64,000 nucleotides of DNA from Caecitellus pseudoparvulus (Eukaryota > Protista > Bigyra: Bicosoecida). The position numbers were made by a program, and so were the translations under genes. The DNA lies in the NCBI GenBank assembly GCA_965644315.1, contig CBFFRQ010000062.1:434001-498000 (forward strand), in the 5' to 3' direction. Below, piece by piece: positions 8,153-26,386 of this stretch. Under the pieces are notes generated by a model. That model was not told the DNA's origin. It was given only the letters and a program-made list of their open reading frames with translations, and searched no databases. Position 1 is the stretch's first letter; every line of letters begins with the position of its first letter.

Positions 8153-11100
8153 CTACTCAAAAGCCACCACTACAGCCAAGCCATGCTTCTCCTTCCCCTT
8201 GTACGCCCCCCATATGCCATCAAACCACTCACCTTCTCCATAGTCGTACAAACAGACCAGATGCCCAGGAACATGCGTCTTGATGTGCGCATCGATTGCA
8301 GCCCCATCTGCGTCTGCTGCCACGTCAAATGGAACCGCATGCACTGGCACCTCGCCGGTGTACGCCTGCAAGTTGGCGTCGTGCAAGGTTGTGTCGAAGG
8401 GAAAGCCTTCCTCAGTCGGCACCTTGTACACACGCAGAATGGGAACTGCGCTCACGTACACTCTGCAAGTACCACTCCACACGTGGCCCAGGACGGCTGG
8501 CAAGAACGCGTGCTGGTTGCGGGCAGCGATGGGTTCCCAGCCTCCGTTCAAGTCTTCATGGGCGACCACGACGTGCTGCCCCATGCCCAGCCCTCGGACC
8601 ACACGCAACAGCGCAGAACCAGACATCTCGCCAGCCTCGTCACAGACGTCGGCAAAGGGCACCTCCTCCACACGCGCTTCGAAGAGCCCGGGAGTCAACC
8701 ACGGTTGTGGGGTCTCATCTTGCACAAGCTCTGAAACGGTGAAAGTGGGCTGCGGGCAGCACGATGACGTGTCGCGCAAGGCAAGCACCAAGTTCGTCAA
8801 GCCAGCCAACGCGGCTCCGTTGTCGTCAGGCAATACTTGCCATTGGTCGTACCCGTCAGCGCGGAAGACGGCATCAACGAAGGAGTTGCCCTGGATGTCA
8901 GCCAGCGACCATCCGAGACACTCCGCCACCCTCGCCAAAAGCGGTGTTGAATCGCTAGCTGCAATGTCCCAATCGCAACGCTTCACATCATCACCCACCG
9001 GAACAAAGTCTGCGCTGCTGGCTGTGCCACTTTCGACAGACGTGGCATTCGGCTGCAGGTGCTGGACGTGGACTGACAGCGTCACCTTGGCCGGCGGCAG
9101 AGCTGCAGGCGGCTGCAGCAGAAGCTGGTCGCCCCACATCGGACCGTCTGGGTCAGAGCACAGTGCCAAGAACGCCCTGTGTTCAAGGAGCGCCCCATTT
9201 AGCTGCTTCAACTCAGCAATGACATTTTCAACGTCAACTGGCTTGCACAAGGTGTGCATGCTTGTCAATGCATCGCGAGCTTTGGAAGTGACTTTGCCAA
9301 TTCGAGAGGAAAGATTGTCCACAAAACCTTGCAAACCGTCCGAGTCAGGTGCACCGCCCGTTGGTGTGCAAGTTTGAAAGAAGCGGCAAGCATCAGCATC
9401 CAGCACTTTTGCACTCTTCACTGCCTCTCTTCCTTGCGTAACCGCTTCTTCGGCAGGATCAACGGTGCTAGGGACAGGGCCATCGGGGTGAATGGGCAAG
9501 ATCGGTCCGTCATCATCCGAATCAACGATGTCATCCGGAAGGGCTGGGGGATCGGTGATTCGGTTCGATGTTGAAGGGACATCGATGTCGCTTTGCGTGT
9601 CATCATCCGTCTCCAAACCAACAGGAGGCAGATCTTTCGTTTCTGAATCCACACTGCTCAGTTCGTCTTTCTTGAGGAACAGGACTCGGACACGGTACAT
9701 GCCAGCCACATTGGTGTCCTGCTGTGACAGCTGTGCGTTTCGCTTTGCTTGAGCTCGGGAGGCAGTCTGCATCAACTGGAACAGCCTGCCCTCAGCACGC
9801 CTGAGCTCCCGCATCAGCGAGGGCACGTGCAACAGCTGCAGTGGCTGATCGCCCGCGCCAGCATCTGTGCTGAACAACTTCAAGCAGAAGGTCCCTAATG
9901 TGTCGTCTTGCAAATCTCCCAGCCATCCCTTGATACCGTCTTGGGCTTCCAGGAACTCAAGCGGCGAGTTCTTTTGCATGTCCTTGGCCACTCGCTCCAA
10001 TGCTCCCAACAAGGAAGTGAGGCACTGCAATGTGACATTGATAGAGTCCGTGCTGCCATGTGCTGCCTCCACTTCACAGTCCTCCAAGCCTTGGCGGATC
10101 ACTCTTTGCACATTTGCGGGAAGTGGTTCACCGCTTAAGTCTGCTTCCTGCTTCCCTGGGACATCGGTCTTGTCAACAATCACTGGAAGCATCTCGATGC
10201 TGCTTCCCTTCAGATGATCGAAGGCAGGGTTCCACCGCTTCCCCCGTGTCGGACCCTGGCTGTCCATCAGGACTTGCAGCGTTGGCAGCGTGTCTCCACC
10301 CACTTCTGCTCGTGCAAGGTGCAGGAGTTCCTCAAGCTGGGCCACGAACTCCTTCTTTGTGATCCCTTTGCTCTGTCTTGCGATTATCTTCAGCACACGT
10401 CTGCCAAGTGATGGTTCTTCCTGTGTGCCCTGCTCTGCTGCTTGACCCTCTCCTCGAGCACGCTCCCGCCAGGCTTTCACATCCTCCCGCAGCAGCCGCG
10501 CCAGATTCCTGAGCTGTGACGTTCCTGGCTGAGCAGAGAGTGCAGGCACGCTTACGCCAGGGGTTTGAGCAGGGCTTGTACTCTCACGTGCTGCTCCACC
10601 AGTCTCTGGAATGCTGGGCAGCTCGAGTACCGACTCTTGGACTTCCTTGCGAGTCTGCAACGGCTTGTCGTCAGCTGGAAAATTCAGAGTTGCTCGTCCG
10701 GCAAGCGTGAAGGGGAAAAGCAGGTGGGCCAATTGTGTCGGGCGGAGATCGAACTTGCTGCGTGGCATGGGCGGCAACTTCATGTTCTGCCCGCGCTTGT
10801 ATCCCGGCGGCAGAAAGCGCTCCATCGCGAGTTCGCCCACTTTTGGCATTGGCAGCAGGTTTTGGGAAAAACGATACTTCTTACCACAGCCTCCCGTCTT
10901 GCCCCCTGCACGCCGCTGAGCTTCCTGTCGCCTCGCAATGTCGTCACTCGTCTCCTCTGTGTTGCGACCGCAGCGCGCAATGTCACAGCCTCCGCTCTGC
11001 GCCGCGAGTCTCCCGCAGTGAGGGCAAATGCTCGTCTTAATGCTGTACATCAGCATTTGCTGCTGCCACGCGGACGCCTCAACTGCTGCTGCCAGGGAGT

Positions 11101-14100
11101 CCGACAGGGCCGAGCCTGCAGTTTCGACTGCGGCGGCTCCAGCATCTGCTGTCCCGCGATCCACGGAGAAAGAACAGAGCACGGAGGCAAGCAGGCAGGT
11201 GGCTGTCTCTTCAGAACTTAAGCCGTGCATGGGCTTCACGAGTCCGTTAACGCCAGACAGTAGGAACCTCTGGGGTGCAAGGTCTTGCGCAAGAGTGGAT
11301 AGGGGAACGCCTGGTGCCTCACCGAGCATCCAGCATGACGCGTTCACGCCTCCATCTACCGAGGCGCGGACAATGCGTGCAAGTGGCTCCATGCCCAAGA
11401 TCATGTTCTGCGTCAGACAAAGCCGCTCTCGAAGCATGCGCATCGGAGCTGCCCCACTCATCTCACCTGCATGCTGTGGAAGCTTCACCATGTCTCTCAG
11501 ACGCAGCTGTACAGCACCCTCGCGTTGCCTTTCCTCAGATGCACGCAGCACGAAGTCCTGGATCGGTCTCTCAATTGCATCCTGCCTTCCACACACTGCG
11601 GTGAACTCCTGAAACTCCTCACGCAGCTCCTTCCAAGCATCCAAGAATGCCACGACAATGTTCAGACCGCGCTCTCGAACCGCTGCCGGCAGACGTGGGT
11701 CTCTAAGCACTACTTGCATGGTCACATCGTTGGCTTCAGTGTCCGTGAACAACAGGGCGGCTTCTTCCATGCACCAGTTGTACGCCTTCAACATCAAAGG
11801 GATGTGCTTGCTGAACCGCAGCGCCGCCCCACGGTCTGTGCTCGTCACCTCCAATGCAACTTCTGCCACATCTTTGAACTCGGAAGGCCGCTCAGTGTCT
11901 CGGCCTTGCGCAGCAGCCCCCGCACTGCCTGCAGGTTCATCGTGCAGTGCGACCAGGTCCAGATGTCTCAACTGCCCCGCAACTTCCTCCAGCTTCAGGG
12001 ACAGCGCCTGCTGAGCAGCACGAGGATTCTGCTCGTCCAGCATGCACTGCACCTCAAAGCTTGCCTTGCTGACGGCGTTGATCAGCACACTGAAACTCAA
12101 ACCAGCCACCCCATGGAGCTCCCGCACCTTCGCTTGGCGTGTGTCCTCCCCAGCTGCAAGTACAGCGTCACATGCAGCCTGAACCTGGGCTTGGGTGCTT
12201 TGGCTGGCCAGACTCACTGCACTCCATGCACCAAGGCCCAGGCTTGTCATAACACCATTCCGCGCCAGAAGCTTGGTCAGCGTTGCTATGTCTCCACTGT
12301 CGTGAGAAACGATGCGACAGAAGAGGAACGAAGCCCATGCTGGGCTGCTCTGCACAAGCCATTGGGTGCAAGCCTGCACCTCATCCGTGCACCAGTCCGC
12401 CACATTGCCATGCACGATGCACCTTGCCAAATCGTCACAAAATGCAACACACCGCTGCATGAAGCCGACCCTGTCGTACATGCTCCAAGCACGACCAGAC
12501 AAACCTGCCTGGTCTCCACACAAGTTCGTCGCTTGTGCTGAGAGTGCGTTCGTCTCAGCGGATCGTTGGAACGAGAAAAACCCTCCGACGACTCGCAGCA
12601 CCTGTGAGCCTTCATTGCTGTGTGCCATGTACGCGATCGGCGCACCTGCGGCACTCCCATCTGCTGAATCGCCCTGTATGTCAGAAGTGTACGATGTGCT
12701 GACCTCAATTGGCATGGGCCACCGGGAGCCTGGCAAGGCTTCCGCCAACACGGTGTGCAGAGCCTCTCTAGTACTATCGGCTGCATCTTCAGAAATACTG
12801 CACAGCAATTCCAGCAGTGCAACTCGGCCTGTCAGAGACAAGCACTCCGGATCGCCGAAGAGCACTGAGGGCGCCGTGTCCATCTCCCGCACTGTAGCAT
12901 TGGTGTGGCCCACAAGACCGCCAACCAAGGCCTGCAGTGCGCCAGCCGATGCAGGAAGGCTGTTCGCAGTTGAAAGCCACACCAGGACAGCAACGCAAGC
13001 GTCCCTGGCGGGCTCGATGAGCGGACCTTCGCGCAAACTCGCGACCTGCGCCAGAGCAAGCAATGCGAAGTCCAGCGCTGGCATGCTGTCGTATTCATGC
13101 TGGCATTCAACCAGGCACTCCGCAACTGTCTTTCTCAGTCGAGCTGGCACCCTGCAAAGCACCTCGAAGGATACGAGAAGTACTACACAAACCTGCAGAG
13201 TCCCGGGGAAGTACTCTTCAGCAGACTGGCCGCTCCGCAGGGAAAACTCGCGCAATGTTCGAACTTGTTCGACCCACTTGCACCACTCTTCCTCACTCTG
13301 CACAGCATCATCGATATCTTCTGCAAGCTTGCCCACTGCAGATCGTGCGATCTCAGCAGCGGCTGACTCCACCCCGTCACGCATGATTTCAGCCTTGAAA
13401 TCCTCCAGCTGCTCGTCACTCGACACTCCAATGAGTGAGCTGAGCATTGACTGCAGTGATACGCCCAGATTTGCGAGCATTGTCTTGAGAATCACAGGGG
13501 TGAGCACTGAGGCAAGTGGAACCTCTTGCTGACCCCTTAGACGTTCGATTTCAGTCGCACACCGACCTTTCAATGCAAAAGACACAAGCTCAAACTCCTT
13601 TGGAGACAGGCGCCGCTCAGACGTGGTCTGAACCCTCACACTACTCTCAGCGGGGCAAATGAAGCCCAGTGTGATGCGGATAAAATCCTGAAACCAAGCT
13701 TTTCGAGCTGCCTCGTTCTCCGCAAGCAGCTCCAAGGCTGGCTTCAAGAACGAGAAGCTTCCGGGCGCCTGCTGTGGAAGATCCAGTCGTCGAACTGCCT
13801 CACGGAGAGTGGCCGAAGGTTCACCTCCACTTGATATGCGCGAGGCATCAAGCAAATCAGTCATAGCTTCCATGAAGCTTGAGAAGCATGGTGTTGAGGG
13901 GGCCCAGGGCGACTGAGGAACCAAGTTCAGCGGGTAGAAACTGTGCTGCAGAGCTTTCTTGCGAATCACTTGCCTTGCAACCACCGACTTCAGGCACGTC
14001 GATGCAAACTTGGCTCCCCATACTGCAAGAGCGGCACTCTCCCACGCTGCAGAATCCGGCAAAGCGTTAGGGCTCAGGCCTGCGATGGCCTCCAAGCCGT

Positions 14101-17100
14101 AGTCTTGGCACAGGCTTGTGAGGACATCTGGGAGCATTTTGTTGAACAACCAGGTGATGCCATCGCGAATCTGCGACAAGACACTGCCTTTCATGCCATC
14201 CTCCACAACAGCATCAGCTGCATCGCGCAAGGCGGCTTGGGCTGTCTGATGCCAGAAACGCTGCAGCAGCTCACCCAAAGCAGCGATCAAATACGGTCGT
14301 GCCTTCACAATGTCAGCTAGTGTGCCTGGGCCAGCCCTGCCGTTTGAAACGAAAATCGAAGCTGTGTAGAATTCCGGAACGCGTTCAAGTCCTCTACTTC
14401 TAACTTCCTCCACCTTTGCCCGTTGATGCCTGAAGGTCACCCTCCGAGCAGCCTCGAGCACCAGGTCCTCAAGTGATGCTCTGAGCTCCTGGCCCGCATC
14501 ACAGCCGCCATCTGCACTCGGCAGCCCCATCGCAGCAGCAAGCCACTTGTGCGACTGCTCCCCTGGTCTGACCCCCAAGGCATCGCCCCCTTCGCCTTCC
14601 GCCACCACATCAATGCCATCAACAAACACGTTCTCCCAAGCTGATGACAGAGGTACGAAGTTGTACGCGGCTCCCAATGACGCCAGCTGCAAGGGGCTGT
14701 ACAGGATCATCACAACCGCCGGGGTGGGGATGCTCCTCCATGCCCTGCATGCCTCACTCTCACGCAAGCGAGTCTGGAACACGGCTCGACACGAGTCAAT
14801 GGCTTGGCGGACGACATTTACCTGGCTTGCTGTGTGACTGCCCATGTTCGCACACACGACCAAGGATGGCAGCTCTGAGTTGGGCTCGATGCAGCCCTGC
14901 TGGGCAACACGCAACGCAAGCTCGAAGAAGTCGCTGATCCTGTCCACGATGCCAGTGGAGCTGGACGCCTCTGACAGCGAGTACACGAAGGCCGACTGGG
15001 GCGCTACCGCGCCAGCTGCAGCTCCGTCAGCAGCCGCCCCGCCTCTAATGCCACCTTCCAAAGCTGCATGCCTGCTCAAGTCGAGTGACGCAAGAGACTC
15101 CACCCTGCAGCCAAGCAGGGCTGCAGCACTTGCACCGCAGCTCTCCAACTGGGCCACTCCTGAGCTGTGGCGCGCAAACACCATGAACTGACACGCAGAC
15201 GACACAGACTTTGAAGGTTCCCTGGTGGCTGACACTGCACGCTGCCAAGCTGTGCGGACTGAGTCAAGCAGGCCATGCAACAGCCGCTGCCCACTGAAGT
15301 GCTCCTGTCTCGCCACATACTCCGTGACGTACCGAGAAGGGAAGACGCCGTTGCGGTTGCCGGAGGCGAACGCACCAGCACGTGCCATCTGGAGCAGCTG
15401 CGCATTGCATGCATCCACATGCCTCTCCATGGATGCAAGCAAGCGCTTTGTCACAATACACTCAGGGCCTGCTTCTGCCCCTGCATCAGGGGCAGCAGCA
15501 GTGCTGTAGCCCACCACACCTTCCTCGCCTGCTGCTCCTGCCTCCGATGCTGAGGCAGGCTGCCCCTCGTCCCCTGAGCCGTCCATCATGCGGAACGGCG
15601 AGGGGACTTCAAAGTTTGTGTCCATGCTTTGCGTTTGCCGTAGCAGACGCAGAATCAGAGCGGGCACAGTCTCAGCTTCGGTGTACCCTTGGAACATCAA
15701 GGAAGGGTGTCCAGAGGCCACAAAGCCGGCGAACCTCTCAACCTCCTCCTCAAGGTGGTGGAAGAAGGCCTGCAGACCCGGCTTGTATCGGATGCCACTG
15801 AAGCACGGCGGGATGTGCTGGGGCAAGCTTTCAAGCTGGCTCCGCAGAGCGTCACGGGCAGACAGGACGAACTTGGAGAACCGATTCAGCAGCGGACTGG
15901 GCATGTGCCGAAGCTGACTCAAGGGCACATGCACAACAACCTTGAAGGCGGGGTGCACGTGCACTGGGATGGACATGGCGCCAATGGTGATGTCAGCGTA
16001 GTACGTCTTCTTGCCTTTGTACGTCGCAGAGCGGTAGTACCGGTTGAACACATCGTACAGCGCTGTGAACACAGACTGCGGGCAGTTCACGAGCAGAGCA
16101 GTTTCACCACTCCCCGCCGCTTGCTTGACACGGCGCAAGGTCTTCGCGATGTTCGTCGGGTTCTGGTCATCTGGGAAGTCACTCAGCGAGATCACCGTAG
16201 TCGCCCCACGATCCAGGATGCCCAGGTCAAACAGCATGTCCACGCCTGCCTCACAGTTGGACCGGTCCACCACCAGGGCGTGTCGGAAGTGGGCTTTGCT
16301 CGGGTCGCCCTCGTACTCCTGCCCCAACAGGTTGGAAAGAGACTCGAGTGCTGCCGGCTCGTACTGCCTTCCGCCTGCTTGGCCAGCTGCCCCACCGTGT
16401 GCTGCCCCACCACCAAGGCCGCCCAGTTGGCACTCGAGCAGGAAAGCCTCAACAAGGCGGCTGAACTCCTCACGGTCCCCTGCGATGCGGGACACTGTCT
16501 GCATGTTGCATCGGAGTCCTCCCACGAGCACATCGGCAGTCAGCCTGTGCAGCCCCGCATCCTGCAGCCTGTGCCGGATGTGGCGACACAAGTACACGAA
16601 GTCGCGCAGATGGAACCAACTAAAGAACCTGCCACTCAATGCATCACGCTGGGACTCAGCCTGGAAAGCTGCGCAGATGCCACGGACCAGCTCCAGCTGC
16701 CTTGACGTGTCTCCGTACTTCGGATGTGCCGACGTCAGCACTCCATCCACAAGCTCCTTCACCAGCTTGCGCGAGCCGTCCTTCAGCAACAGCTGCATGC
16801 CAAGAGTGACGATGTCCTTCTGCTGCACTTTGCCCTGACTGCAGTGCACGGACCGGTTGGTCTTTGCAGCGTCCAGCGTCGAGTTGGACAGCAAGATTGT
16901 CGGGGGGCCGTCCTTCTCCTCCAGCACATCGTGCAGAGCTTTCAGCGCTTGGCGGCGCTCCTTCGGCAACCCCGCCTCATCGATCACAACACACACACGA
17001 GTGGCGTTCCCAGGAGTTGATGCGATCCGCTGCCGCTGGATCGCACTCTGGTACACCTTCTGCAGCTCCTCAGAGGTGGTCACCTCGGAACACTGGTAGT

Positions 17101-20100
17101 GCTCAATCTGCATGTGTGGGAACCTCCGCAGCACTGCGCTCTGTGAGCTCCGACCAGCGAAGTTGTCGGCCACGATCATCACTGCCATGGTCTTCCCACA
17201 CCCTGGTGGGCCCGTCGTCAAGACGTTGAAGGTGGGCGTCACACACACAGCCAGGCTTGCTGTGAACACTGCTTCCTGCATGGGCGCTGTCTCAGCCAGG
17301 CCATCTGGCCGCTTCTTGATCTCCGAGAACAAGTGCTCCATGGCCCCGTTCAACGTGTTCTGCAGCTCGCCATGCACCAAGTCGGGCTGTCCCACACCGT
17401 CCATGGCGGCCAAGAACGCTAAGCGGTAGGAATCGTGTCCATTCACGCGTTCAGCTTCGACTCGACTTGGCAAGCGCAGCAAGTAGCACACTGCAATTGA
17501 CACTAACAAGGACTGCTTCAACAAGTCACGCAGGAACTGCACACTGCCTTGGTCTGTCCTGAGGCTCGGCTTGGGCAAGAAGGGGTTCACGGAGACTTCT
17601 CGCCCGGCCACCTTCTCACCTGTGCGCACTCCAGCCCGCAAGAGCCATGCCGCGAGGTCCACACACCGCACGAGGTCTCGAAGAGACACGTGAATGCGCC
17701 GCAGTTCGAAGCGCCGGACAGTCTCCTGGGCTGCGAGCACAAGCCTTGCCGCCATCTGTGTGAAGCCTTGCAATGCCCGCGCATGCTGCTCCTTCACTCC
17801 CCGTGTCACTTGCCCAACGTGAGGCAACTGCCAAGCCTTCTGCTCCACGTACATGCGCAGGAACGCCTCTTCATCCTCAGTCTGCAGATCAGGCGCCGCC
17901 TTCTCCATCGTTCGCATGGAGGCTGGGAGGTACTTCACGATGAATGGAGCGTAGGCATCCTCACCATCCTCGCCATCCTTGCTTCCTTGCCGTTCCAATG
18001 GCGCAGGTGGCGGTGCAGCTTGACCTGCGCCAGCTGCCGCTTGTGCGCCCTGCACAGGCGTGTAGTTCACCACTCCTTGTGCCTGTCGCCGAAGCTGCTC
18101 CCTCGTGGCCTTGGGGTTGATGGCGCCCACGAAGTACAGGTTCTTGGGCAGTTCACGCCCGTTCACGGAGTGCTGTGTGAACGCCTCACATACGATGCCG
18201 AGGTCCCCTGCCGTGTTCAGCTCATCCACGAACACACACATGGTCAGCTTGGCAGATGCAGCGTCGCGCTTCCTTGCTCGCGGCACAGACCGCTCAGCGT
18301 CGGCAAGGGTGGCTTCGATTCGCTTCAGCTCTGCTTCCCACTTGGATGCAGTCATGCCAGCGTGCATGAGCACACGGCTGTACAGCGTCGCCGTCTCGCT
18401 CGTGAACACTGACTTGAACACCACCCGGAAGTCCAGCCTCTGTGAGAATGTGTCCGTGCCGGCTGCCGCAGGTTGCGCCGCCCCTGCCTCTCCAGCTGCC
18501 GCTGCCCCTGCTCCAGCCCCGCCAACACCCTGCCCTTGCTTGCTCAGCTCCTCCATTTCCGAGCTGACGGCATCAAAGGTCACCCTCGTCTCCGTCATGT
18601 GCTTGACGAGCTCCGCCACGTCGGCCACACGGCCCTGCGTGTGGAAGTAGTTGAAGTTCTGCTGCAGCCGCTCCCTGTGTGCGGCTGGGATGCCAGCAGC
18701 CTGCCGTGGATACTGCCTCAATGCCAGCTGGATCAAGATGGGCACTTCGTCAAACAGCTTGTTCTGCAGCTCCTCAGATGCATGGGACTCGAACACGTCC
18801 ATGACATGCTCCAGATCCACGACACGTGGGTCATTCGTCAGCTCCACCTTCTCCCATGACGGAGAGACTGGAGGCACATTCGTGACCTCCACCGTGGTCA
18901 AGTCAGGGGACACCTCATACGTCGCACCCTTGATCCGCAGGATGCCGGACAGGGCCGCGATGTCACTGCTGACAGCTTCGATGCTGCGCCCTTCCAACTG
19001 CAGCTGGCGCAGTCGAGCTTGCAGCCGGGGCAAGTTCACACGCGCAAAAGCACGCAACGCAGTGACCAGGAACAAGGACATGTCAAACAGGACATCATCA
19101 CGGGAGTTGCGCAGGAGGCTGTACATGTTCACCAAGAAACTCTTGCACACACCTGTGTCGCCTGCAAGCACCATGGAGTTGCCCGACTTGCACCAGTCGT
19201 GCAGCTCCAACATGCGCAGGGAGTCCCGAAGCGCCAGCACAAAGTTGTTGCGCTCAAGCAGTGGACGCAGCAGTGCAGTGTCCCGCATGCCAAAGGCTGG
19301 CGCGATCCCAGCCCGCAACTCTGCCATGTCGAAGCCATTTTTTCCGTCCTGAGCGTCTGAGCTCAGGTATGTGACCATGTTGTCAGAGCCAGGAGCCAAG
19401 CTCAGGGTCCGCATCAGCGTCTTGGCTTCCTGCAGCGTGCATGACGATGGGTACACAACGAGGACTCTGAAGTCGAAGACGCCTCCGACAGGTTCAGAGG
19501 ACTTCACCTTTGTCGGCCGGATGGTGGCGACACGCAACCCACCATGGAACATCCCACACGTTGTAGCGACCTCGTAAATCATGAACGACAGCATCTCGTA
19601 CCAAAACGAAGCCTTGGCACATTCATGCCTGATTGATGATTGACTCGGATTCTTCTTGGCGGTGTCGCTCATGGTCTGCAAGTACTTCAGTCGGGTTTCC
19701 AGCAGCTTGGCCATCTGCACGACCAAGCGCAGGTTCACATCAGCTGCGCCCCTCAAGAAAGGGTGCTCCGCAAGCGCAACAGCAAGTATGTCTCGCAAGG
19801 CTTCATCGCCCAGGCGATCCGCCAAGCCTTCCATGCTCGGAAGGAACTTCGAGCTCCGGATCTCGGCACAGGCGTCAGCGAGGCAGCGGCAAGCATCGCC
19901 TCCGCAGCCCTGTGCGTGCATGTGCAGGCCAAGCCCCACAGCACACAGTCGGAGTGTCGGGTCCATGTGCAGGTCGCCCATGTTGACGACCCGCATGGAG
20001 TCGCGCCATTTCACAGCCAAGTGCCCGTCCAGCTCGGCCAGAAGTGGATGGGACGCTGCACGAACACCACCGCCCGCGCCTGCACTGGGCCAAGCTTCCC

Positions 20101-23100
20101 GAGCCGGGAACTCCGTCTTGCCCAGTGCTGGCAGCTCCATGGCGACGTGAAGCTGGACTGAACAGTCGAGAACACATGCCTCACCTGACTGCATGTCACG
20201 CAGAAGTCCCAGGCTGAACATGTCAAACAAGCACTGCGACAACTGACCCACGTCAGCCTGCTCAAACACGTCAAAGTGCATCCACACACGGCCGCCGCTT
20301 TCTCCCAGCCCCTGCACTACTTCCTTGTACTGCTGGATCAGATGGGACACGGTGAACCCTTCGTGCACTGGGACACGAATGAGCTTCGCGCCATCAGCTT
20401 CGCAGCTCCTGGAAATGTGGAATGACTTGCCACTTCCAGGCCCGCCAGCCACCAAGTCTGCTCCAGATACGTGGCGAGCTCCCGCAGCCTGGTGCTGTGC
20501 TGCCCAGCTGAGGGATCGCAGCTGGTTGACGCTGGCCGGCACTGGCTCCTTCTTCCACCAAGTATCAGCTGCTGGCGCGACAAACTGACGCATGCCCACC
20601 ACATCGCCAAATAGCAGGTACACTTCCACTGAGAGGTCTGGCGACTGCAAGCACCGGTTCAATGCATCTCGTGCCACCGCGGAGAGACGATCCACCCCCA
20701 GGCAGTAGACAGCAGGAGCAAATGGGGCCTTGCTGCACAGCATGCGCCCCAGCCACTCGATGTCTGCAACAGTCGCGTCAGCATCACAACGATACAGCTG
20801 ACTGGGATGCAGGGGCACGCCCACTGATGCATGGTGCTCCAGCGCCTTGTGGCACATGTGGTGCAAGGACTTGCCTCGCAGCAGCACCACCGACACCGCA
20901 CCTGCATCTTCAGGAACCGCGCCCACATCCATTGCCCGTGCCAGTACACCTGCCGCCCAGGGCAAGCATCGAGCGACCTCGTCAAAGCCACCAGTGGCCT
21001 GTGCCTCCAACTTCTCACACATGGCTTGCTGTGCCAAAGCGTCCGTGGCAGGATAACACAGCATGGCATATGGCAGCAGTGCTTGCACGGCCTTGCGTGG
21101 CTCGTACTGCGTTCCCGCGAAGCCCTGCAGCGCCTGACTGAGGCCAAGCAGCAGCTTCGGCGTCAGAGCACTCAGTGCAGGGCAGTCATACAGTGCCTCC
21201 TCTGTGCCCCCTCGCCACGCATCAAGCTGGGCCTCCAAGAGCTCAAGTCGATTCCTCACCTTGTCCACAATGCTTTCTGTGGAGTCAGTGTCCACTTCGT
21301 TCAAGGGCACTGCAGCGCCACCCGGCTGATACTCGGGGTGGCCAGCGCTGGCCAGCTCAAGGTGCACTTTGTGAGCTTCCTCTGCGAGGTCATATGCAGC
21401 AAGGATGTGCTGCACAGCGTCGCCATCGTCATCACCTGACTCCCCCACGACCTGCGCATTGGTGATGTTCTCCAACAACTGATCGGGTGTCCACGGCACC
21501 CTCGTACCACTCGTTTCGCCTCCAATGGCGTACGAAAGTGAAATGCCACTGCGGTGCCCCGTCTCGTCGAGAATGGACACGAACTGACCTGTCCCACTGA
21601 TCTCACGGTGCAGCAGCAGGAGGTTGGAGTTTGCTGCGTCCCGGTTGGCGCGCTGCAGCGCAGATGCCACACGCTCCCAGTTATCCACCAGCGCCTTGAT
21701 CTCACCAACCAACGCCTCAGCAACGGCGCCTCGAGTGCTCCGTGCTCCACTCCCACTGGCATCCTCCCGCGATGCTCGTGAAGTGATCACCCCATCCACA
21801 GCCCTCACAAGGTCCACAATGGACACTTGAGCGGCCCTTGCTCCCTCCGCTGCCATGCCGCCTCGAGCGAGTGGGGAAGCCTGGCGGGCTGGCAGTACAG
21901 CCTCAGCAAGCTGCCGCAGTGGCGGCAGGTGCCGCAGAAGCCCTTGCAAGTGGGTGTCAGCGGTTGATGCTTGCAAGGCCAGCTCGAACTGACCTGCATA
22001 GTCCTCGCTGTGCTCGTCGAGGTACTGCATGAAGTCTGACATGGACGGCAGTGCCGCGATGACTTGCATGATCGCCAGATCCAGCCCGCCGAGCTCGGCA
22101 CTGATGTTGGCCAGGGCGGCCTTTACCTGACTCACCTTGGCGCTTTGTGCCCTCCGGATCGGAGCACAGGCCACCTCCACATCACGGCACCCCAACACTC
22201 CCAGTGCTTCCCTGAAAGCGCCCAACGTGTCTTGCATGCGCAGCAACTCAGTCGCTTGCCGCACGTTCGCCACCTGCGTCTGGAAGACACTCGGCCGATC
22301 CGACGAAGACCCACCTTGGTCGTCGTTGAAGAAGCTGGAGATGGCGGCGAGCTCGCGCCCAAAGTGAGCACCACGTGGCAAGTCGTCGCCGCCCCCCATT
22401 CCCTGCGTGCCAGACCTGCCCAGCTCAGACACCTTCTGGTCACCCATGTTCAGCAGCTTCTTCAACCCTTCCAGGACTGCCTCGATCGCTGCATCCCAGC
22501 CACGGCCGGTGTGACGTTGGCCTGCCAGTCGCCGCGTGATGGCTTCCCGCACAAGTCGATCGCGGAACAGTACACTCTTGTGGTCCATGAAGTGCTTCAG
22601 CGCCCTGAACGATGTCTCAGACAGCACAACTCCACCTTGCTGCAGCTCAACAAAGTTCAGCCAATCTCTCACGGTGGAACCATCGTCTGGTGGTGGAACA
22701 GCGTCTCGTGCTTGGCCGGCACCAGCTCCGAACAGAGTCAGCTCCGAGTACCACAAAGCCATGGCTCGCAGGGACTGTGCCTTCTCCTTCGAGTTCGCGA
22801 GCGTGGCCATGCACTCACGCACGGCTGCGGGCACTTGATCTTCCTTCGTCAGTGCGATGCCAAGCACTCGCTGCAGCTTGGCATCCTCGGCCAAAGTCTG
22901 CAGGTCGTGCACAGTTACAGAATTATCGGAGAGGGAATCCTCTATCGTATCCATGCACTCTTGCACGTGGTCCCACACAATCCACACGACGTCGGACAGG
23001 CTGCAACTCTCAACATCGCCATCGTCATCGCCATCATCCTGGGTCTGGCAAGCCACCCTCTGAACATTCAAGACAGGCAATGGCTTCCCGCCAAACTCCT

Positions 23101-25714
23101 CGTTTACAGATGCGAAGACTCCGGTCCCTTCCACAACGCTCAGCAGCATGCATAGTTCATCAAACCCAGCCACACGGAGCAGCACCCACGGGTTCGACCG
23201 TGGCAGCTCAAGCAGGGCAGCCACGCCTAGCATCAAGCGTGGCAGACATGCCGTACGCCGCACACGACGTCCACAGCCGTCATGAGTCAGCAAATTCATG
23301 ATGGCGCGACCCTGTGACTTCCCTTCTTGTGCAGCCCACCAATGGCGTGACAGACGACCAGCAACAGCCGCAGCGAAGATGGTGTACGCCCATGGAAGAC
23401 AGCCTGCCTCAGACTGCACCTGGACCTTCTCAGCGGCATGCAGAGACCTCATTGCCTCTCCATCCACTCCAGCATGCTCGTGCGATCCCGCACACTTGCA
23501 GATTGTCTGGCAGCTGGTGTCCAGTACTCGGGCCAGCTCCGTTTCGAAGGTCCCAGACTGTGCTGCGCTTGTGGATGGCGTGAACACCTCCCGTGACAGC
23601 TCCACCACACGCTCGGACAGCAACAGCAAGTGTGTCGCGGTGAGAATGCGGTTGCTGAACCGTGAGCGAGCGGGGGCGCGCCGTGTGTCGGGAGGGAGGT
23701 TGGCCTCAGCACTGGCCAGCCAGGTCTCCAGGCACAGAAGCAAGCACTGCTGCTTGGATGGCGGGTCTTGTCCACGGGAGCACGTGGCCGCAACGACCAG
23801 CCCTGCACCTGCTGCGAAAGCCACCAAGTCCCCGCCAGCACCGGAGCGAGCCTCGTACACACAGCAGTAGCTGTAGAAGTGCCACATCCACTGTCCAACG
23901 AGGGCACAACTTTCCTCCAACGTGGGATACCGACTGGCCACCTGAATGGCCGAAGCAGGCGTCATTCCTACCATGTTACTGGGCTGCGCGGCAGACTCGC
24001 CAACAGCCGTCGCAAGCCTGTCATACCAGGCCTCCTGCTGCCAGGCCTCGGCGCTGCCGCCAGCCCCAAGCCAGGTGTCCATTTCACGAACGAAGTTGGC
24101 CACGTGGTCTTCAGGGACACCGAGGTGTGCCCCCTGCAGCATGTCACGAAAGACTCCGTCATAGGCTTCAACCTGTGGAGCTGCTGACCCTGGACCCACA
24201 TCCACAGCAGCACCTTCAGCTGCAGCATGGCCTCCACCTCGGCTCCGGGCCAGAGATTGCCCTAGCCCTTGCAGAGCCTCGGCCAAACACACCACGTCGT
24301 CGCGTGCAAGGGCACCCAGTCTGAATACGGATGCGACGAGCCTGCGCATGTACTTCACTCGAGACTCGGTGCCCGAGCAGAGCAAGATGCCCACGTAGGC
24401 GGGTTCAGCCAGCAGAGCCTGCAGCTCAGCCCACTGGACCCGCAAAGTCTGTCCAGCACTCCAGGCAGCCTGGAAGCGCTGCGCGACAGCAGCAAACACT
24501 GGACGAAGTAGCTCGCCTTCAGGAAGGGAAAGTCTTTGAACACGTGCAAGGGCAAACAGGCAGTCCAAGAACTGTGCTGGCGCCATACCAGCGTGCAGCG
24601 ACATGAAGTCTGCATGTGGTTGTTGCACCATGTACGTTACTGCTTCTTGGCTTGTGATCTGATCCTCGAGCAAACCACTCTTCTCCATGGAGGCGCGCAC
24701 ACAGAAACAAACTAGGGTCACAGCCAGCAGCTGTCGAGGAGTTCGCGACAGCACATGCAAACAAGCCTTTGCTGTTTGTTGCGGAAACACTACGCTGTAC
24801 AACGAAGCATGAAGAGTGCTCAGAATGGCAGGATCAAGTCCAACTGCTTCTGCGACAAGCCTCAGCGCTGCTTCACAGGCGCTGCCATCTGGACCCAGCA
24901 CTAGGGTCTCCATGTTCTGCAGCCACAGAGTGTGTGCAGTTGCTCCAGCCACAGCTGCACCTCGCAGCGTGGACCCATGCTTCCTGGCCAAATCAGACAT
25001 CTGCACTGCAGCAAGCACTGCCGGCAAGATCCTGATGTGCAGCATGAGGTTTCCACTTGTGCTGGGGCGCTGCAGGATGTCACTCAAGAGCTCACCGAGG
25101 GCGAGTGCACTTGAGGCGGTCTCCTCAGACGAAGGGCTATAGTAGCAAGCGTCAAGAGCCCACTTGCAGCGCTGGGAAATGCCGAGTACGGAACTCTGAA
25201 AAGCAGCATCGGGAGCACATGCGGCCTCAAGCCACTCGCAGAGGTCAAGCACTGAGGCATGGGGCTGCTTGGCCTCAGTGGCTAATCCCAAGGCTTGAAG
25301 GACAGACCTCCATGTGCTTGTGCCACCCGCCGTTGTGCCGACATCTTGCGTTGAAGGTGTACTAGTGCGGCCGCCTTCCTTCCTCGCATGCTTCCATCCT
25401 TTCCCAACGCGAAACGACCACAAACCATCCGCTGTCTGCCACTTGTAATTCTTCAGTGCTAGAGGACCATACACTGACTCTAGCTGCTGAGTCAAGCGCC
25501 CTGTTCGTGGGTCGATGGCGGTGGAGGTCTTGGAGCCGATGTACGCGTTCAGTTCATCGCAGAAGTTGAAGACTTCCTTGCTGCTTCCTGATCTCCATGA
25601 TACTGAGTACAGGACACGTCCATGTGCATTAAGGAACCTTCCTCGAGTCTGGTCGAAGCGCACGCCACGTTGAAATCCGACTGCTTTGCGGCGAGGAGCA
25701 GCGGCCCAGGCCAT
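8153..25714 (-). CDS. Giant RNF213/mysterin-like dynein-type AAA+ ATPase with putative Rcat-like E3 motif (copy A, ~5,853 aa from ATG 25714)
   Basis: A single 17.5-kb ORF carries RNF213-type motifs in order: GGPGSGKS, AGDTGVCKS, FVDELNT, FVGAINP, VSLRDLVRC, GPPGCGKT, YQCSEVTT, VVIDEAGL, LKALHDVLE, SNSTLDAAKTNR, FHLRDF, SDFPDD, LYDVFNRYY, VHPAFKVVV and PLLNRFSK. ATG 25714 follows a CGCAG acceptor conserved in copy B. Confidence 0.88.
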   Translation of the reverse strand: MAWAAAPRRKAVGFQRGVRFDQTRGRFLNAHGRVLYSVSWRSGSSKEVFNFCDELNAYIGSKTSTAIDPRTGRLTQQLESVYGPLALKNYKWQTADGLWSFRVGKGWKHARKEGGRTSTPSTQDVGTTAGGTSTWRSVLQALGLATEAKQPHASVLDLCEWLEAACAPDAAFQSSVLGISQRCKWALDACYYSPSSEETASSALALGELLSDILQRPSTSGNLMLHIRILPAVLAAVQMSDLARKHGSTLRGAAVAGATAHTLWLQNMETLVLGPDGSACEAALRLVAEAVGLDPAILSTLHASLYSVVFPQQTAKACLHVLSRTPRQLLAVTLVCFCVRASMEKSGLLEDQITSQEAVTYMVQQPHADFMSLHAGMAPAQFLDCLFALARVQRLSLPEGELLRPVFAAVAQRFQAAWSAGQTLRVQWAELQALLAEPAYVGILLCSGTESRVKYMRRLVASVFRLGALARDDVVCLAEALQGLGQSLARSRGGGHAAAEGAAVDVGPGSAAPQVEAYDGVFRDMLQGAHLGVPEDHVANFVREMDTWLGAGGSAEAWQQEAWYDRLATAVGESAAQPSNMVGMTPASAIQVASRYPTLEESCALVGQWMWHFYSYCCVYEARSGAGGDLVAFAAGAGLVVAATCSRGQDPPSKQQCLLLCLETWLASAEANLPPDTRRAPARSRFSNRILTATHLLLLSERVVELSREVFTPSTSAAQSGTFETELARVLDTSCQTICKCAGSHEHAGVDGEAMRSLHAAEKVQVQSEAGCLPWAYTIFAAAVAGRLSRHWWAAQEGKSQGRAIMNLLTHDGCGRRVRRTACLPRLMLGVAALLELPRSNPWVLLRVAGFDELCMLLSVVEGTGVFASVNEEFGGKPLPVLNVQRVACQTQDDGDDDGDVESCSLSDVVWIVWDHVQECMDTIEDSLSDNSVTVHDLQTLAEDAKLQRVLGIALTKEDQVPAAVRECMATLANSKEKAQSLRAMALWYSELTLFGAGAGQARDAVPPPDDGSTVRDWLNFVELQQGGVVLSETSFRALKHFMDHKSVLFRDRLVREAITRRLAGQRHTGRGWDAAIEAVLEGLKKLLNMGDQKVSELGRSGTQGMGGGDDLPRGAHFGRELAAISSFFNDDQGGSSSDRPSVFQTQVANVRQATELLRMQDTLGAFREALGVLGCRDVEVACAPIRRAQSAKVSQVKAALANISAELGGLDLAIMQVIAALPSMSDFMQYLDEHSEDYAGQFELALQASTADTHLQGLLRHLPPLRQLAEAVLPARQASPLARGGMAAEGARAAQVSIVDLVRAVDGVITSRASREDASGSGARSTRGAVAEALVGEIKALVDNWERVASALQRANRDAANSNLLLLHREISGTGQFVSILDETGHRSGISLSYAIGGETSGTRVPWTPDQLLENITNAQVVGESGDDDGDAVQHILAAYDLAEEAHKVHLELASAGHPEYQPGGAAVPLNEVDTDSTESIVDKVRNRLELLEAQLDAWRGGTEEALYDCPALSALTPKLLLGLSQALQGFAGTQYEPRKAVQALLPYAMLCYPATDALAQQAMCEKLEAQATGGFDEVARCLPWAAGVLARAMDVGAVPEDAGAVSVVLLRGKSLHHMCHKALEHHASVGVPLHPSQLYRCDADATVADIEWLGRMLCSKAPFAPAVYCLGVDRLSAVARDALNRCLQSPDLSVEVYLLFGDVVGMRQFVAPAADTWWKKEPVPASVNQLRSLSWAAQHQAAGARHVSGADLVAGGPGSGKSFHISRSCEADGAKLIRVPVHEGFTVSHLIQQYKEVVQGLGESGGRVWMHFDVFEQADVGQLSQCLFDMFSLGLLRDMQSGEACVLDCSVQLHVAMELPALGKTEFPAREAWPSAGAGGGVRAASHPLLAELDGHLAVKWRDSMRVVNMGDLHMDPTLRLCAVGLGLHMHAQGCGGDACRCLADACAEIRSSKFLPSMEGLADRLGDEALRDILAVALAEHPFLRGAADVNLRLVVQMAKLLETRLKYLQTMSDTAKKNPSQSSIRHECAKASFWYEMLSFMIYEVATTCGMFHGGLRVATIRPTKVKSSEPVGGVFDFRVLVVYPSSCTLQEAKTLMRTLSLAPGSDNMVTYLSSDAQDGKNGFDMAELRAGIAPAFGMRDTALLRPLLERNNFVLALRDSLRMLELHDWCKSGNSMVLAGDTGVCKSFLVNMYSLLRNSRDDVLFDMSLFLVTALRAFARVNLPRLQARLRQLQLEGRSIEAVSSDIAALSGILRIKGATYEVSPDLTTVEVTNVPPVSPSWEKVELTNDPRVVDLEHVMDVFESHASEELQNKLFDEVPILIQLALRQYPRQAAGIPAAHRERLQQNFNYFHTQGRVADVAELVKHMTETRVTFDAVSSEMEELSKQGQGVGGAGAGAAAAGEAGAAQPAAAGTDTFSQRLDFRVVFKSVFTSETATLYSRVLMHAGMTASKWEAELKRIEATLADAERSVPRARKRDAASAKLTMCVFVDELNTAGDLGIVCEAFTQHSVNGRELPKNLYFVGAINPKATREQLRRQAQGVVNYTPVQGAQAAAGAGQAAPPPAPLERQGSKDGEDGEDAYAPFIVKYLPASMRTMEKAAPDLQTEDEEAFLRMYVEQKAWQLPHVGQVTRGVKEQHARALQGFTQMAARLVLAAQETVRRFELRRIHVSLRDLVRCVDLAAWLLRAGVRTGEKVAGREVSVNPFLPKPSLRTDQGSVQFLRDLLKQSLLVSIAVCYLLRLPSRVEAERVNGHDSYRLAFLAAMDGVGQPDLVHGELQNTLNGAMEHLFSEIKKRPDGLAETAPMQEAVFTASLAVCVTPTFNVLTTGPPGCGKTMAVMIVADNFAGRSSQSAVLRRFPHMQIEHYQCSEVTTSEELQKVYQSAIQRQRIASTPGNATRVCVVIDEAGLPKERRQALKALHDVLEEKDGPPTILLSNSTLDAAKTNRSVHCSQGKVQQKDIVTLGMQLLLKDGSRKLVKELVDGVLTSAHPKYGDTSRQLELVRGICAAFQAESQRDALSGRFFSWFHLRDFVYLCRHIRHRLQDAGLHRLTADVLVGGLRCNMQTVSRIAGDREEFSRLVEAFLLECQLGGLGGGAAHGGAAGQAGGRQYEPAALESLSNLLGQEYEGDPSKAHFRHALVVDRSNCEAGVDMLFDLGILDRGATTVISLSDFPDDQNPTNIAKTLRRVKQAAGSGETALLVNCPQSVFTALYDVFNRYYRSATYKGKKTYYADITIGAMSIPVHVHPAFKVVVHVPLSQLRHMPSPLLNRFSKFVLSARDALRSQLESLPQHIPPCFSGIRYKPGLQAFFHHLEEEVERFAGFVASGHPSLMFQGYTEAETVPALILRLLRQTQSMDTNFEVPSPFRMMDGSGDEGQPASASEAGAAGEEGVVGYSTAAAPDAGAEAGPECIVTKRLLASMERHVDACNAQLLQMARAGAFASGNRNGVFPSRYVTEYVARQEHFSGQRLLHGLLDSVRTAWQRAVSATREPSKSVSSACQFMVFARHSSGVAQLESCGASAAALLGCRVESLASLDLSRHAALEGGIRGGAAADGAAAGAVAPQSAFVYSLSEASSSTGIVDRISDFFELALRVAQQGCIEPNSELPSLVVCANMGSHTASQVNVVRQAIDSCRAVFQTRLRESEACRAWRSIPTPAVVMILYSPLQLASLGAAYNFVPLSSAWENVFVDGIDVVAEGEGGDALGVRPGEQSHKWLAAAMGLPSADGGCDAGQELRASLEDLVLEAARRVTFRHQRAKVEEVRSRGLERVPEFYTASIFVSNGRAGPGTLADIVKARPYLIAALGELLQRFWHQTAQAALRDAADAVVEDGMKGSVLSQIRDGITWLFNKMLPDVLTSLCQDYGLEAIAGLSPNALPDSAAWESAALAVWGAKFASTCLKSVVARQVIRKKALQHSFYPLNLVPQSPWAPSTPCFSSFMEAMTDLLDASRISSGGEPSATLREAVRRLDLPQQAPGSFSFLKPALELLAENEAARKAWFQDFIRITLGFICPAESSVRVQTTSERRLSPKEFELVSFALKGRCATEIERLRGQQEVPLASVLTPVILKTMLANLGVSLQSMLSSLIGVSSDEQLEDFKAEIMRDGVESAAAEIARSAVGKLAEDIDDAVQSEEEWCKWVEQVRTLREFSLRSGQSAEEYFPGTLQVCVVLLVSFEVLCRVPARLRKTVAECLVECQHEYDSMPALDFALLALAQVASLREGPLIEPARDACVAVLVWLSTANSLPASAGALQALVGGLVGHTNATVREMDTAPSVLFGDPECLSLTGRVALLELLCSISEDAADSTREALHTVLAEALPGSRWPMPIEVSTSYTSDIQGDSADGSAAGAPIAYMAHSNEGSQVLRVVGGFFSFQRSAETNALSAQATNLCGDQAGLSGRAWSMYDRVGFMQRCVAFCDDLARCIVHGNVADWCTDEVQACTQWLVQSSPAWASFLFCRIVSHDSGDIATLTKLLARNGVMTSLGLGAWSAVSLASQSTQAQVQAACDAVLAAGEDTRQAKVRELHGVAGLSFSVLINAVSKASFEVQCMLDEQNPRAAQQALSLKLEEVAGQLRHLDLVALHDEPAGSAGAAAQGRDTERPSEFKDVAEVALEVTSTDRGAALRFSKHIPLMLKAYNWCMEEAALLFTDTEANDVTMQVVLRDPRLPAAVRERGLNIVVAFLDAWKELREEFQEFTAVCGRQDAIERPIQDFVLRASEERQREGAVQLRLRDMVKLPQHAGEMSGAAPMRMLRERLCLTQNMILGMEPLARIVRASVDGGVNASCWMLGEAPGVPLSTLAQDLAPQRFLLSGVNGLVKPMHGLSSEETATCLLASVLCSFSVDRGTADAGAAAVETAGSALSDSLAAAVEASAWQQQMLMYSIKTSICPHCGRLAAQSGGCDIARCGRNTEETSDDIARRQEAQRRAGGKTGGCGKKYRFSQNLLPMPKVGELAMERFLPPGYKRGQNMKLPPMPRSKFDLRPTQLAHLLFPFTLAGRATLNFPADDKPLQTRKEVQESVLELPSIPETGGAARESTSPAQTPGVSVPALSAQPGTSQLRNLARLLREDVKAWRERARGEGQAAEQGTQEEPSLGRRVLKIIARQSKGITKKEFVAQLEELLHLARAEVGGDTLPTLQVLMDSQGPTRGKRWNPAFDHLKGSSIEMLPVIVDKTDVPGKQEADLSGEPLPANVQRVIRQGLEDCEVEAAHGSTDSINVTLQCLTSLLGALERVAKDMQKNSPLEFLEAQDGIKGWLGDLQDDTLGTFCLKLFSTDAGAGDQPLQLLHVPSLMRELRRAEGRLFQLMQTASRAQAKRNAQLSQQDTNVAGMYRVRVLFLKKDELSSVDSETKDLPPVGLETDDDTQSDIDVPSTSNRITDPPALPDDIVDSDDDGPILPIHPDGPVPSTVDPAEEAVTQGREAVKSAKVLDADACRFFQTCTPTGGAPDSDGLQGFVDNLSSRIGKVTSKARDALTSMHTLCKPVDVENVIAELKQLNGALLEHRAFLALCSDPDGPMWGDQLLLQPPAALPPAKVTLSVHVQHLQPNATSVESGTASSADFVPVGDDVKRCDWDIAASDSTPLLARVAECLGWSLADIQGNSFVDAVFRADGYDQWQVLPDDNGAALAGLTNLVLALRDTSSCCPQPTFTVSELVQDETPQPWLTPGLFEARVEEVPFADVCDEAGEMSGSALLRVVRGLGMGQHVVVAHEDLNGGWEPIAARNQHAFLPAVLGHVWSGTCRVYVSAVPILRVYKVPTEEGFPFDTTLHDANLQAYTGEVPVHAVPFDVAADADGAAIDAHIKTHVPGHLVCLYDYGEGEWFDGIWGAYKGKEKHGLAVVVAFE

Positions 25715-26206
25715 CCTGCGACGAATGCACAAGGCGAAAAGTGTCTGCAGCTCGCTGCTTGTACACTCTAGACTCTTCATTGTGTCGGTGGACACAAAAC
25801 CACCCTGTGCGATGAGCAGCAATCCGCACCAGCGAATAGCGCCAGTACATGCGATAGCAAAAGCCAGTGCTTGCCACATGCGCAAGATGCACACACTGCC
25901 ACACAAAGCGAGCCGCAGACACGTCCATGTTACACACCTGACTTGGAGCGAGGCAGGTCTACCGAGGGCGCCTCTTCTTGGGCGGCCGGTGGCTGGAGGT
26001 GTTGGTGCGAGTGCAGAGCTTGCACTTCACCTTGCACGCGATGCTGAAGAGCTGCCCTCAAGCCGGACTGATCGTGGTGCCGACCACGAGCAGCACACAA
26101 GTGGGAAAGAAGCCGAGAGCTGTCAGCTTATTCACCCACACTGCTGGTGTGCGGTGAGAGTTTTGAATTGTGGGGACGGAGTGTGGTTTGCGTTCCACCA
26201 CGCCAA
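8153..26206. repeat. Segmental duplication unit A: 8153-8746 and 14474-26206 are homologous to 31903-32496 and 32551-44303
   Basis: Same-orientation sequence match by direct comparison, from the stop codon to ...GCGTTCCACCACGCCAA upstream of the ATG. Confidence 0.95.
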
Positions 26207-26386
26207 CTTCCGACCCCCCCCTTTCTGGGGCGCCACCACCCGTCAAACTGCTGCAAGCAAGAGGGGCCCAACAAATTCCTCAACAGATTGACTGCTATCG
26301 CAACGTCCTCTTCCCTTTCTCCATTGCGCAAGCAGTGCGGTCTGAGTGGAGACGGCCTTGGCGTTTCACACCATCCTCACTTCACC

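Follow-up and report, generated by a model that had tools for sequence, protein, structure and literature searches.

An RNF213-like giant protein of a flagellate with an Rcat-like zinc finger inserted ahead of its predicted E2-docking domain

Introduction

The described systems that come closest to the locus presented here are RNF213 (mysterin) and the ligases of the RBR type. In human RNF213, the ligands of the RZ finger and the catalytic pair are located at residues 4505–4537 (PMC11549300), with the RING upstream of the RZ, while the C-terminal domain (CTD) on which the E2 docks starts at ~4986 and has been produced as a construct of residues 4986–5207 (PMC12075652). Among the RBR ligases, HOIL-1 displays Trp at position +2 of the catalytic cysteine and is yet active, the distant His510 being needed only for the second step; in both HOIL-1 and RNF216, the helix preceding the finger binds the Ile44 patch of the donor ubiquitin (PMC9834252).

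A giant open reading frame, hereafter copy A, is located in the window, which is the whole stretch of 64,000 nucleotides of Caecitellus pseudoparvulus DNA that was analysed. Judging by its sequence, copy A is RNF213-like but not a canonical RNF213, having neither RING nor RZ. It is not an RBR ligase either, as RING1, IBR and zinc site 2 are all missing. By analogy, it probably works like both, combining the dock of RNF213 with an acceptor of the RBR type. In the open-access literature, neither an Rcat-type domain in an RNF213-like protein nor an Rcat working outside an RBR was found, subscription papers being outside the scope of the search.

Results

An RNF213-Like Scaffold in Copy A

The features of the window are given in Table 1. 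Two numberings are in use for copy A: the earlier note on this DNA counts from Met65 (position 25714), so that its residue numbers equal the ORF numbers minus 64. The numbers Cys4910 and Cys4708 used below follow this count. The host genome is eukaryotic with a size of 30.6 Mb, and the locus of copy A is present in seawater samples. Together with the ciliary RPGRIP1-type gene in the window, this makes a marine flagellate the likely host.

Table 1. Features of copy A and its neighbours in the window
Feature	Position	Strand	Details
Cupin/JmjC protein	1883-3469	+	Neighbour
PP2C phosphatase	3509-6337	-	Neighbour
Copy A, RNF213/mysterin-like, intronless ORF	8153..25906	-	5,917 codons from TTG; stop-free; 5,853 aa from Met at 25714
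CTD-like helical region, probable	9752..10519	-	In RNF213 the E2 docks here; placed solely by position, following the part aligned to human residue 4979
Helical end of the E3 core, hosting the insert	10649..11869	-	Human RNF213 4764-4979; AlphaFold pLDDT 85
Pro-rich return linker	10757..10867	-	Closes the insert
One-zinc Rcat-like finger	10868..11026	-	CPHC-x9-C-x4-CG + 25-residue insert + GGCGKKYRF; ORF 4961-5013 (4897-4949 from Met65); insert between ligands 3 and 4 variable, its helix at 10910-10948
Predicted zinc ligands of the finger	11024-11026, 11015-11017, 10970-10972, 10886-10888	-	
Candidate catalytic Cys	10985..10987	-	TGT; ORF 4974, Cys4910 from Met65; aligns with the spare Cys of Rcat domains
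Helix leading into the finger	11042..11137	-	Equivalent to IBR-RING2 helix; aligned to HOIL-1 424-477; putative function
Second Cys, in AVCG	11591..11593	-	ORF 4772, 4708 from Met65; rival or relay site
Two anchors, 138 residues apart	11807..12346	-	Block of ~350 residues between them missing
Dynein-like AAA core of copy A	15812..20455	-	Homology to RNF213
P-loops of copy A	20423-20446, 19139-19162, 17189-17212	-	
Walker B motifs of copy A	18218-18238, 16976-16993	-	
Proteasome subunit RPN3	26147-28171	+	Neighbour, between copies A and B
Copy B, tandem	31903..43812	-	94% identical to copy A; in-frame loss of copy A residues ~3812-5716
RPGRIP1-type C2 protein (ciliary)	44706-50606	-	Neighbour
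Response regulator-IQ-SAM-ankyrin protein	54094-59454	+	Neighbour

The mysterin scaffold that had been proposed for copy A was confirmed: a phmmer search with the middle part of the protein matched the RNF213 chains of the PDB at E 3e-28, the next family following at E 0.13. Pfam returned faint AAA matches only. The AAA4-like Walker motifs are canonical. The AAA3-like P-loop at 19139-19162 reads GDTGVCKS in copies A and B, with Cys for the usual Gly, and its Walker B is intact; the paralogue on contig C57 displays the canonical GDTGVGKT.

The earlier note had reported neither RING nor RZ in the protein, and no Pfam match to RING, RZ or IBR was obtained anywhere in copy A at E values up to 0.5. 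A RING of the C3HC4 or C4HC3 type was found there neither by Pfam nor by pattern, and 26 relatives gave no Pfam match to RING or RZ. The RZ family PF20173 is absent from copy A; the search of the whole genome for it was also blank, but its control gave no match either. A profile of the C-terminal region of copy A did not reach RNF213 in the PDB.

In copy B, the E3 region is missing completely and the finger module with it, with a junction near 32508-32553; its AAA core and final 200 residues are retained. Copy B is possibly a dominant-negative or adaptor form.

A Finger With the First Half of an Rcat

The cysteine motif of copy A is real, its candidate codon being TGT with Ile two residues on, as had been read. 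The spacing C-x2-C-x9-C-x4-C occurred in 0.2% of 5,000 shuffles of the copy A protein and the tighter pattern CPxC-x8-GC-x4-C in none (0/5,000), by which a chance match was rejected. Other strains carry the finger region as well; these matches are all contigs, and the one RNA run on record does not cover codon 10985-10987. No frameshift is listed in the motif and its sole listed change (10889 G>A) is synonymous.

When 1.84 billion proteins were searched with a profile, 39 matches were obtained, and the same module was recognised in 19 distinct proteins outside this genome, at 20–30% identity. One of these is a protein of Mallomonas annulata (5,680 aa), while most others are metagenomic genes; on the contigs of three relatives, RNF213-type AAA exons lie upstream of the module. 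The consensus among the relatives reads helix-CPxC-x8-GC-x4-CG-(variable)-GCG-x7-NRVPxP. In the genome itself, the module was identified at five other sites (contigs C57, C197, C173, C129 and C184), four of which also match the AAA core, the frame on C129 running off the contig. These paralogues are ~29% identical and share the four predicted zinc ligands without exception. On contig C57, residues ~180-670 of the paralogue (L014-L015) consist of long near-identical Gly/Ala/Pro-rich N-terminal repeats interspersed with small aromatic-rich units, unlike copy A.

Searches of viral contigs gave no match, and word-index protein searches were blank or uninformative. The Atlas matches include small giant-virus proteins of ~105 aa (Nucleocytoviricota) whose features are similar to those of the module (0.91), with a weak similarity in shape (TM 0.43). 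One relative (P0003, NCBI RYH29186.1) carries the label 'archaeon' from its source, but on the tree it falls within the eukaryote-type relatives and is probably a mis-binned protist contig.

The four cysteines of zinc site 1 are conserved among the module members, and no Cys or His ligand for a zinc site 2 follows the fourth Cys in any of them. Of the Rcat claimed in the earlier note, the helix and the first zinc site have stood, and the module is half an Rcat with the second site absent. The finger does stand alone as described, with no second Cys cluster upstream of it that would make an IBR and no RING1 in copy A. Conservation of the candidate Cys4910 in homologs, which the same reading implied, is complete outside the genome (Cys in 19/19 relatives) and partial within it, where three of the five paralogues have Cys and two have Ser. 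Both Ser-bearing paralogues (L003, G000:C197; L006, G000:C184) display long open frames with the four zinc ligands intact. Gly is found at -1 in 19 of the 22 aligned members, and the GG ahead of the candidate Cys reads MY in the paralogues of this genome. The replacement of the His at +2 was also correctly seen: His occupies this position in 7/22 aligned members, and copy A has Ile without any nearby His.

Kinship With Rcat or IBR Domains

The kinship with Rcat, for which an HMM comparison had been suggested, was recovered. Against profiles built from the genome's own RBR ligases, the module family matched Rcat with a probability of 94.5% (E 8e-8) and IBR with 1.3%, and 20/22 members scored clearly higher on the Rcat than on the IBR profile. 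Within the genome, the next match of the family profile was a true Rcat (E 0.0015). In the PDB, the same profile retrieved RBR chains only (parkin, HOIL-1, HHARI), aligned on the Rcat, with E values of 0.07–9 that are each below significance. A language-model search with the module pointed to IBR/Rcat clusters at 0.93, flagged as weak. Searches of Pfam and the PDB with the motif as a single sequence were uninformative, and a match to the Fpg zinc finger (E 0.06) was taken as chance.

The AlphaFold model of the module is confident (pLDDT 88). Its top Foldseek match is the RING2 of HOIL-1 (9egv; probability 0.66, E 0.6), with 53 residues superimposed at an rmsd of 2.5. After re-alignment, 24/24 of the structural matches among those listed were RBR domains, at Z scores of 2–3.4 and with the parkin IBR included; the rmsd on Rcat and IBR domains was 1.3–3 over 32–61 residues. 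Over the fold comparisons as a whole, the Z scores are weak (2–3.6), with the parkin IBR fitting equally well as the Rcat. The modelled fold agrees with RBR domains without discriminating Rcat from IBR; it is the sequence that discriminates, and the IBR reading was rejected by profile (94.5% versus 1.3%), not by fold. An Rcat ancestry of the module is considered highly probable.

Canonical Rcat domains were also observed in very long frames elsewhere in the genome: L021 (contig C92; 4,327 aa), L022 (C30; 3,128 aa) and L024 (C31; 2,639 aa). L021 and L024 show no clear IBR just upstream of the Rcat, and L024 is also without the His at +2.

Location of the Insert

The model of ORF residues 4680–5090 was aligned with human RNF213 residues 4764–4979 (9jwg_A) over 212 residues, with a Z score of 9.0 and an rmsd of 4.1, the best background score among 48,161 chains being 5.2. 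The helical scaffold of the RNF213 E3 core was hence recognised in copy A (Z 9.0 versus 5.2). Since the host region maps to 4764–4979, while the human RZ lies at 4505–4537 and the CTD starts at ~4986, the module is a separate insert just ahead of the predicted CTD. It has a size of ~130 residues and lies several hundred residues downstream of the RZ and RING sites of RNF213. In ~10 relatives the insert is missing and the flanks are joined directly, which sets its limits to approximately 10757-11155 of the window. A location at the RZ or RING site was rejected by the structural mapping and the anchor spacing described below. The claim that the finger stands in place of the RING/RZ was therefore wrong as to position, the insert lying downstream and next to the predicted CTD.

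A Missing Block at the RZ Position

The anchors listed in Table 1 are separated by 138 residues in copy A, by 63–133 in other insert-bearing relatives and by 445–516 in insert-free relatives. The extra block of the latter contains an invariant GLG-x7-KDCG motif and no zinc ligands. It was observed in P0017 (130-520), P0026, P0035, P0036, P0037 and P0002, and in L038 (168-407). The Cys of KDCG lies 241–281 residues ahead of the second anchor, and human Cys4516 ~269 residues ahead of the equivalent point, suggesting by position only that the KDCG block corresponds to the RZ-bearing segment. The block gave no match in Pfam, the PDB or the Atlas (the PDB profile search did not reach RNF213), and it was not found in this genome. 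Its motif lies near the RZ catalytic position, and the block may represent a third type of catalytic Cys module.

Of the sequences covering both sites, the insert alone is present in 16, the block alone in 5 and both in one (P0002), while none is without either. One of the five block-only sequences starts inside the block, and one further locus is also block-only. Fisher's test gave p 2e-4 for this exclusion, on sequences that are related by descent; the tree of the relatives shows three changes of insert/block state, and a single origin behind the pattern is not excluded. The pattern is as would be expected if one catalytic Cys module had been swapped for another.

Discussion

A Candidate Transthiolation Mechanism

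We lean slightly towards the reading of copy A as an RNF213-like transthiolating E3 with a swapped mobile catalytic unit. By analogy, it is a little better than an even bet that Cys4910 is the working ubiquitin acceptor of this enzyme. Binding of nucleotide by the AAA core would switch the enzyme on, as in the ATP gating of RNF213. The E2~Ub would dock on the CTD, again as in RNF213, where it faces a flexible finger, and the CTD would take the role that RING1 plays in an RBR. The leading helix of the insert would grip the donor ubiquitin and Cys4910 (10985-10987) would accept it as a thioester, both by analogy with RBRs. Ubiquitin would be passed on to the substrate, a general base, if any, being supplied, as in HOIL-1, by a residue other than that at the Cys-x-His position. 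A role in defence is a guess, by analogy with RNF213, for a bacterivorous flagellate.

The Rcat profile match (94.5%), the non-ligand Cys conserved in 19/19 relatives, the reciprocity of insert and block (16/5/1/0) and the location of the insert next to the predicted CTD, the E2 dock of RNF213, all speak for Cys4910. Against it stand the Ser in 2/5 paralogues, the absence of a local His, fold matches that are weak and also fit the parkin IBR, reciprocal counts that are not independent, reflecting three changes on the tree, and the assignment of KDCG to the RZ segment by position only. The missing His at +2 does not exclude thioester formation, because HOIL-1 with its Trp at +2 makes use of the distant His510.

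A second cysteine, Cys4708, has to be weighed in this context. It is present in 37/37 sequences regardless of whether they carry the insert, and was also kept in both paralogues with Ser at the candidate position. A structural role, the actual active site or an acceptor in a relay are all conceivable for it. Cys4708 comes to lie in a part of human RNF213 where a de novo disease variant, Cys4856Arg, is located (PMC8360119). Its identity with human Cys4856 was not accepted; gapless arithmetic gives 4856, but from the alignment ends alone.

The invariance of Cys4708, its retention in both Ser-bearing paralogues and the lack of a conserved His after the spare Cys would be explained if the insert were a non-catalytic finger binding ubiquitin or a partner, with the fixed Cys4708 of the E3 core as active cysteine. 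Such a finger leaves unexplained, however, why a spare Cys is present in 19/19 relatives and why the insert and the KDCG block are mutually exclusive, and the tested nucleophile of RNF213 is on a mobile appendage; we regard it as rather unlikely. In a second alternative both cysteines would act in turn, the mobile Cys4910 taking ubiquitin from the E2 and handing it to the fixed Cys4708, from which it would reach the substrate; in other lineages the KDCG or RZ cysteines would fill the first role. Every relative covering both sites does combine one variable 'mobile' Cys module with the invariant core Cys, and the Rcat here comes without the usual discharge His. A tandem-cysteine relay operates in MYCBP2, which lends support to this scheme, but no relay of RNF213 was found in the literature, and two acting cysteines, like the first role of KDCG or RZ cysteines elsewhere, appear improbable.

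A structural zinc ribbon, IBR-like finger or decayed Rcat in a copy A that is an ATPase or scaffold and not a transthiolating ligase, which would suit the missing Pfam match of the module, the parkin IBR among its structural matches, the open frame kept by copy B without the E3 region and the Cys for Gly in the AAA3-like P-loop, is also improbable, as the profiles favour Rcat over IBR, the family as a whole has conserved the spare Cys and other strains keep the region with no frameshift listed in the motif and one synonymous change.

An Exchangeable Acceptor Unit

Cys4910 as acceptor would also fit a wider reading, which we put somewhat below even probability: RNF213-like giants may be a modular E3 chassis, in which the AAA core, the CTD dock and the invariant core Cys are constant and the ubiquitin-accepting unit is exchanged among at least three kinds. 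Just as tentatively, these units would be the RZ finger of animals, a KDCG loop that has no zinc and occupies the RZ position and, at another site, a one-zinc half-Rcat derived from RBRs. The last would, with the same reserve, work without RING1 and IBR, possibly relaying to the core Cys.

If active, the finger defines a minimal Rcat made of a helix and one zinc, and the CTD dock of RNF213 would be shown to be able to serve unrelated catalytic fingers. The module would also be a small, well-predicted acceptor domain for a scaffold whose own RZ active site has been seen only at poor resolution in cryo-EM maps. Point mutants in the invariant core Cys and in the KDCG variant offer handles on ubiquitin discharge by RNF213-type enzymes. 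With these relatives, the occurrence of the RNF213-like ligase family extends to free-living protists, among them the stramenopile Mallomonas.

Comparison With Known Systems

ZNFX1 with its RZ/Miz arrangement is alike in being an immune ATPase with a split design of E2 binding and Cys acceptor (bioRxiv 10.1101/2025.10.14.682297); unlike copy A, it is built on a helicase scaffold with an RZ fold, and no sequence relation was found. The helix-RING2 of HOIL-1 (RBCK1) shares with the module a GCD motif, the missing His at +2 and canonical features in the first half only (PMC9834252). HOIL-1 alone has a Zn2/Cys6 cluster and the base His510 inside a full RBR, neither of which occurs in copy A.

With the Rcat/RING2 of RBR ligases in general (Parkin, HHARI/ARIH1, HOIP, RNF216), the module has in common the leading helix, the pattern CPxC-x9-C-x4-C, the ligands of zinc site 1 and the register of the spare Cys. 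It differs from them by the lack of zinc site 2, an insert of 15–35 residues between ligands 3 and 4, a His at +2 in 7/22 members only, and the absence of RING1 and IBR.

RNF213/mysterin of human and mouse is alike in its giant size, in the AAA core (E 3e-28) and in the end of the E3 core (4764–4979, Z 9.0). A further likeness would lie in a zinc finger that is tethered, bears a spare Cys and works beside a CTD-docked E2 (PMC12075652; bioRxiv 10.1101/2021.05.10.443411). Compared with RNF213, copy A has no RING, no RZ and ~350 residues less at the RZ position; instead, it carries the Rcat-like insert just before the predicted CTD and ~500 additional residues at its C-terminus.
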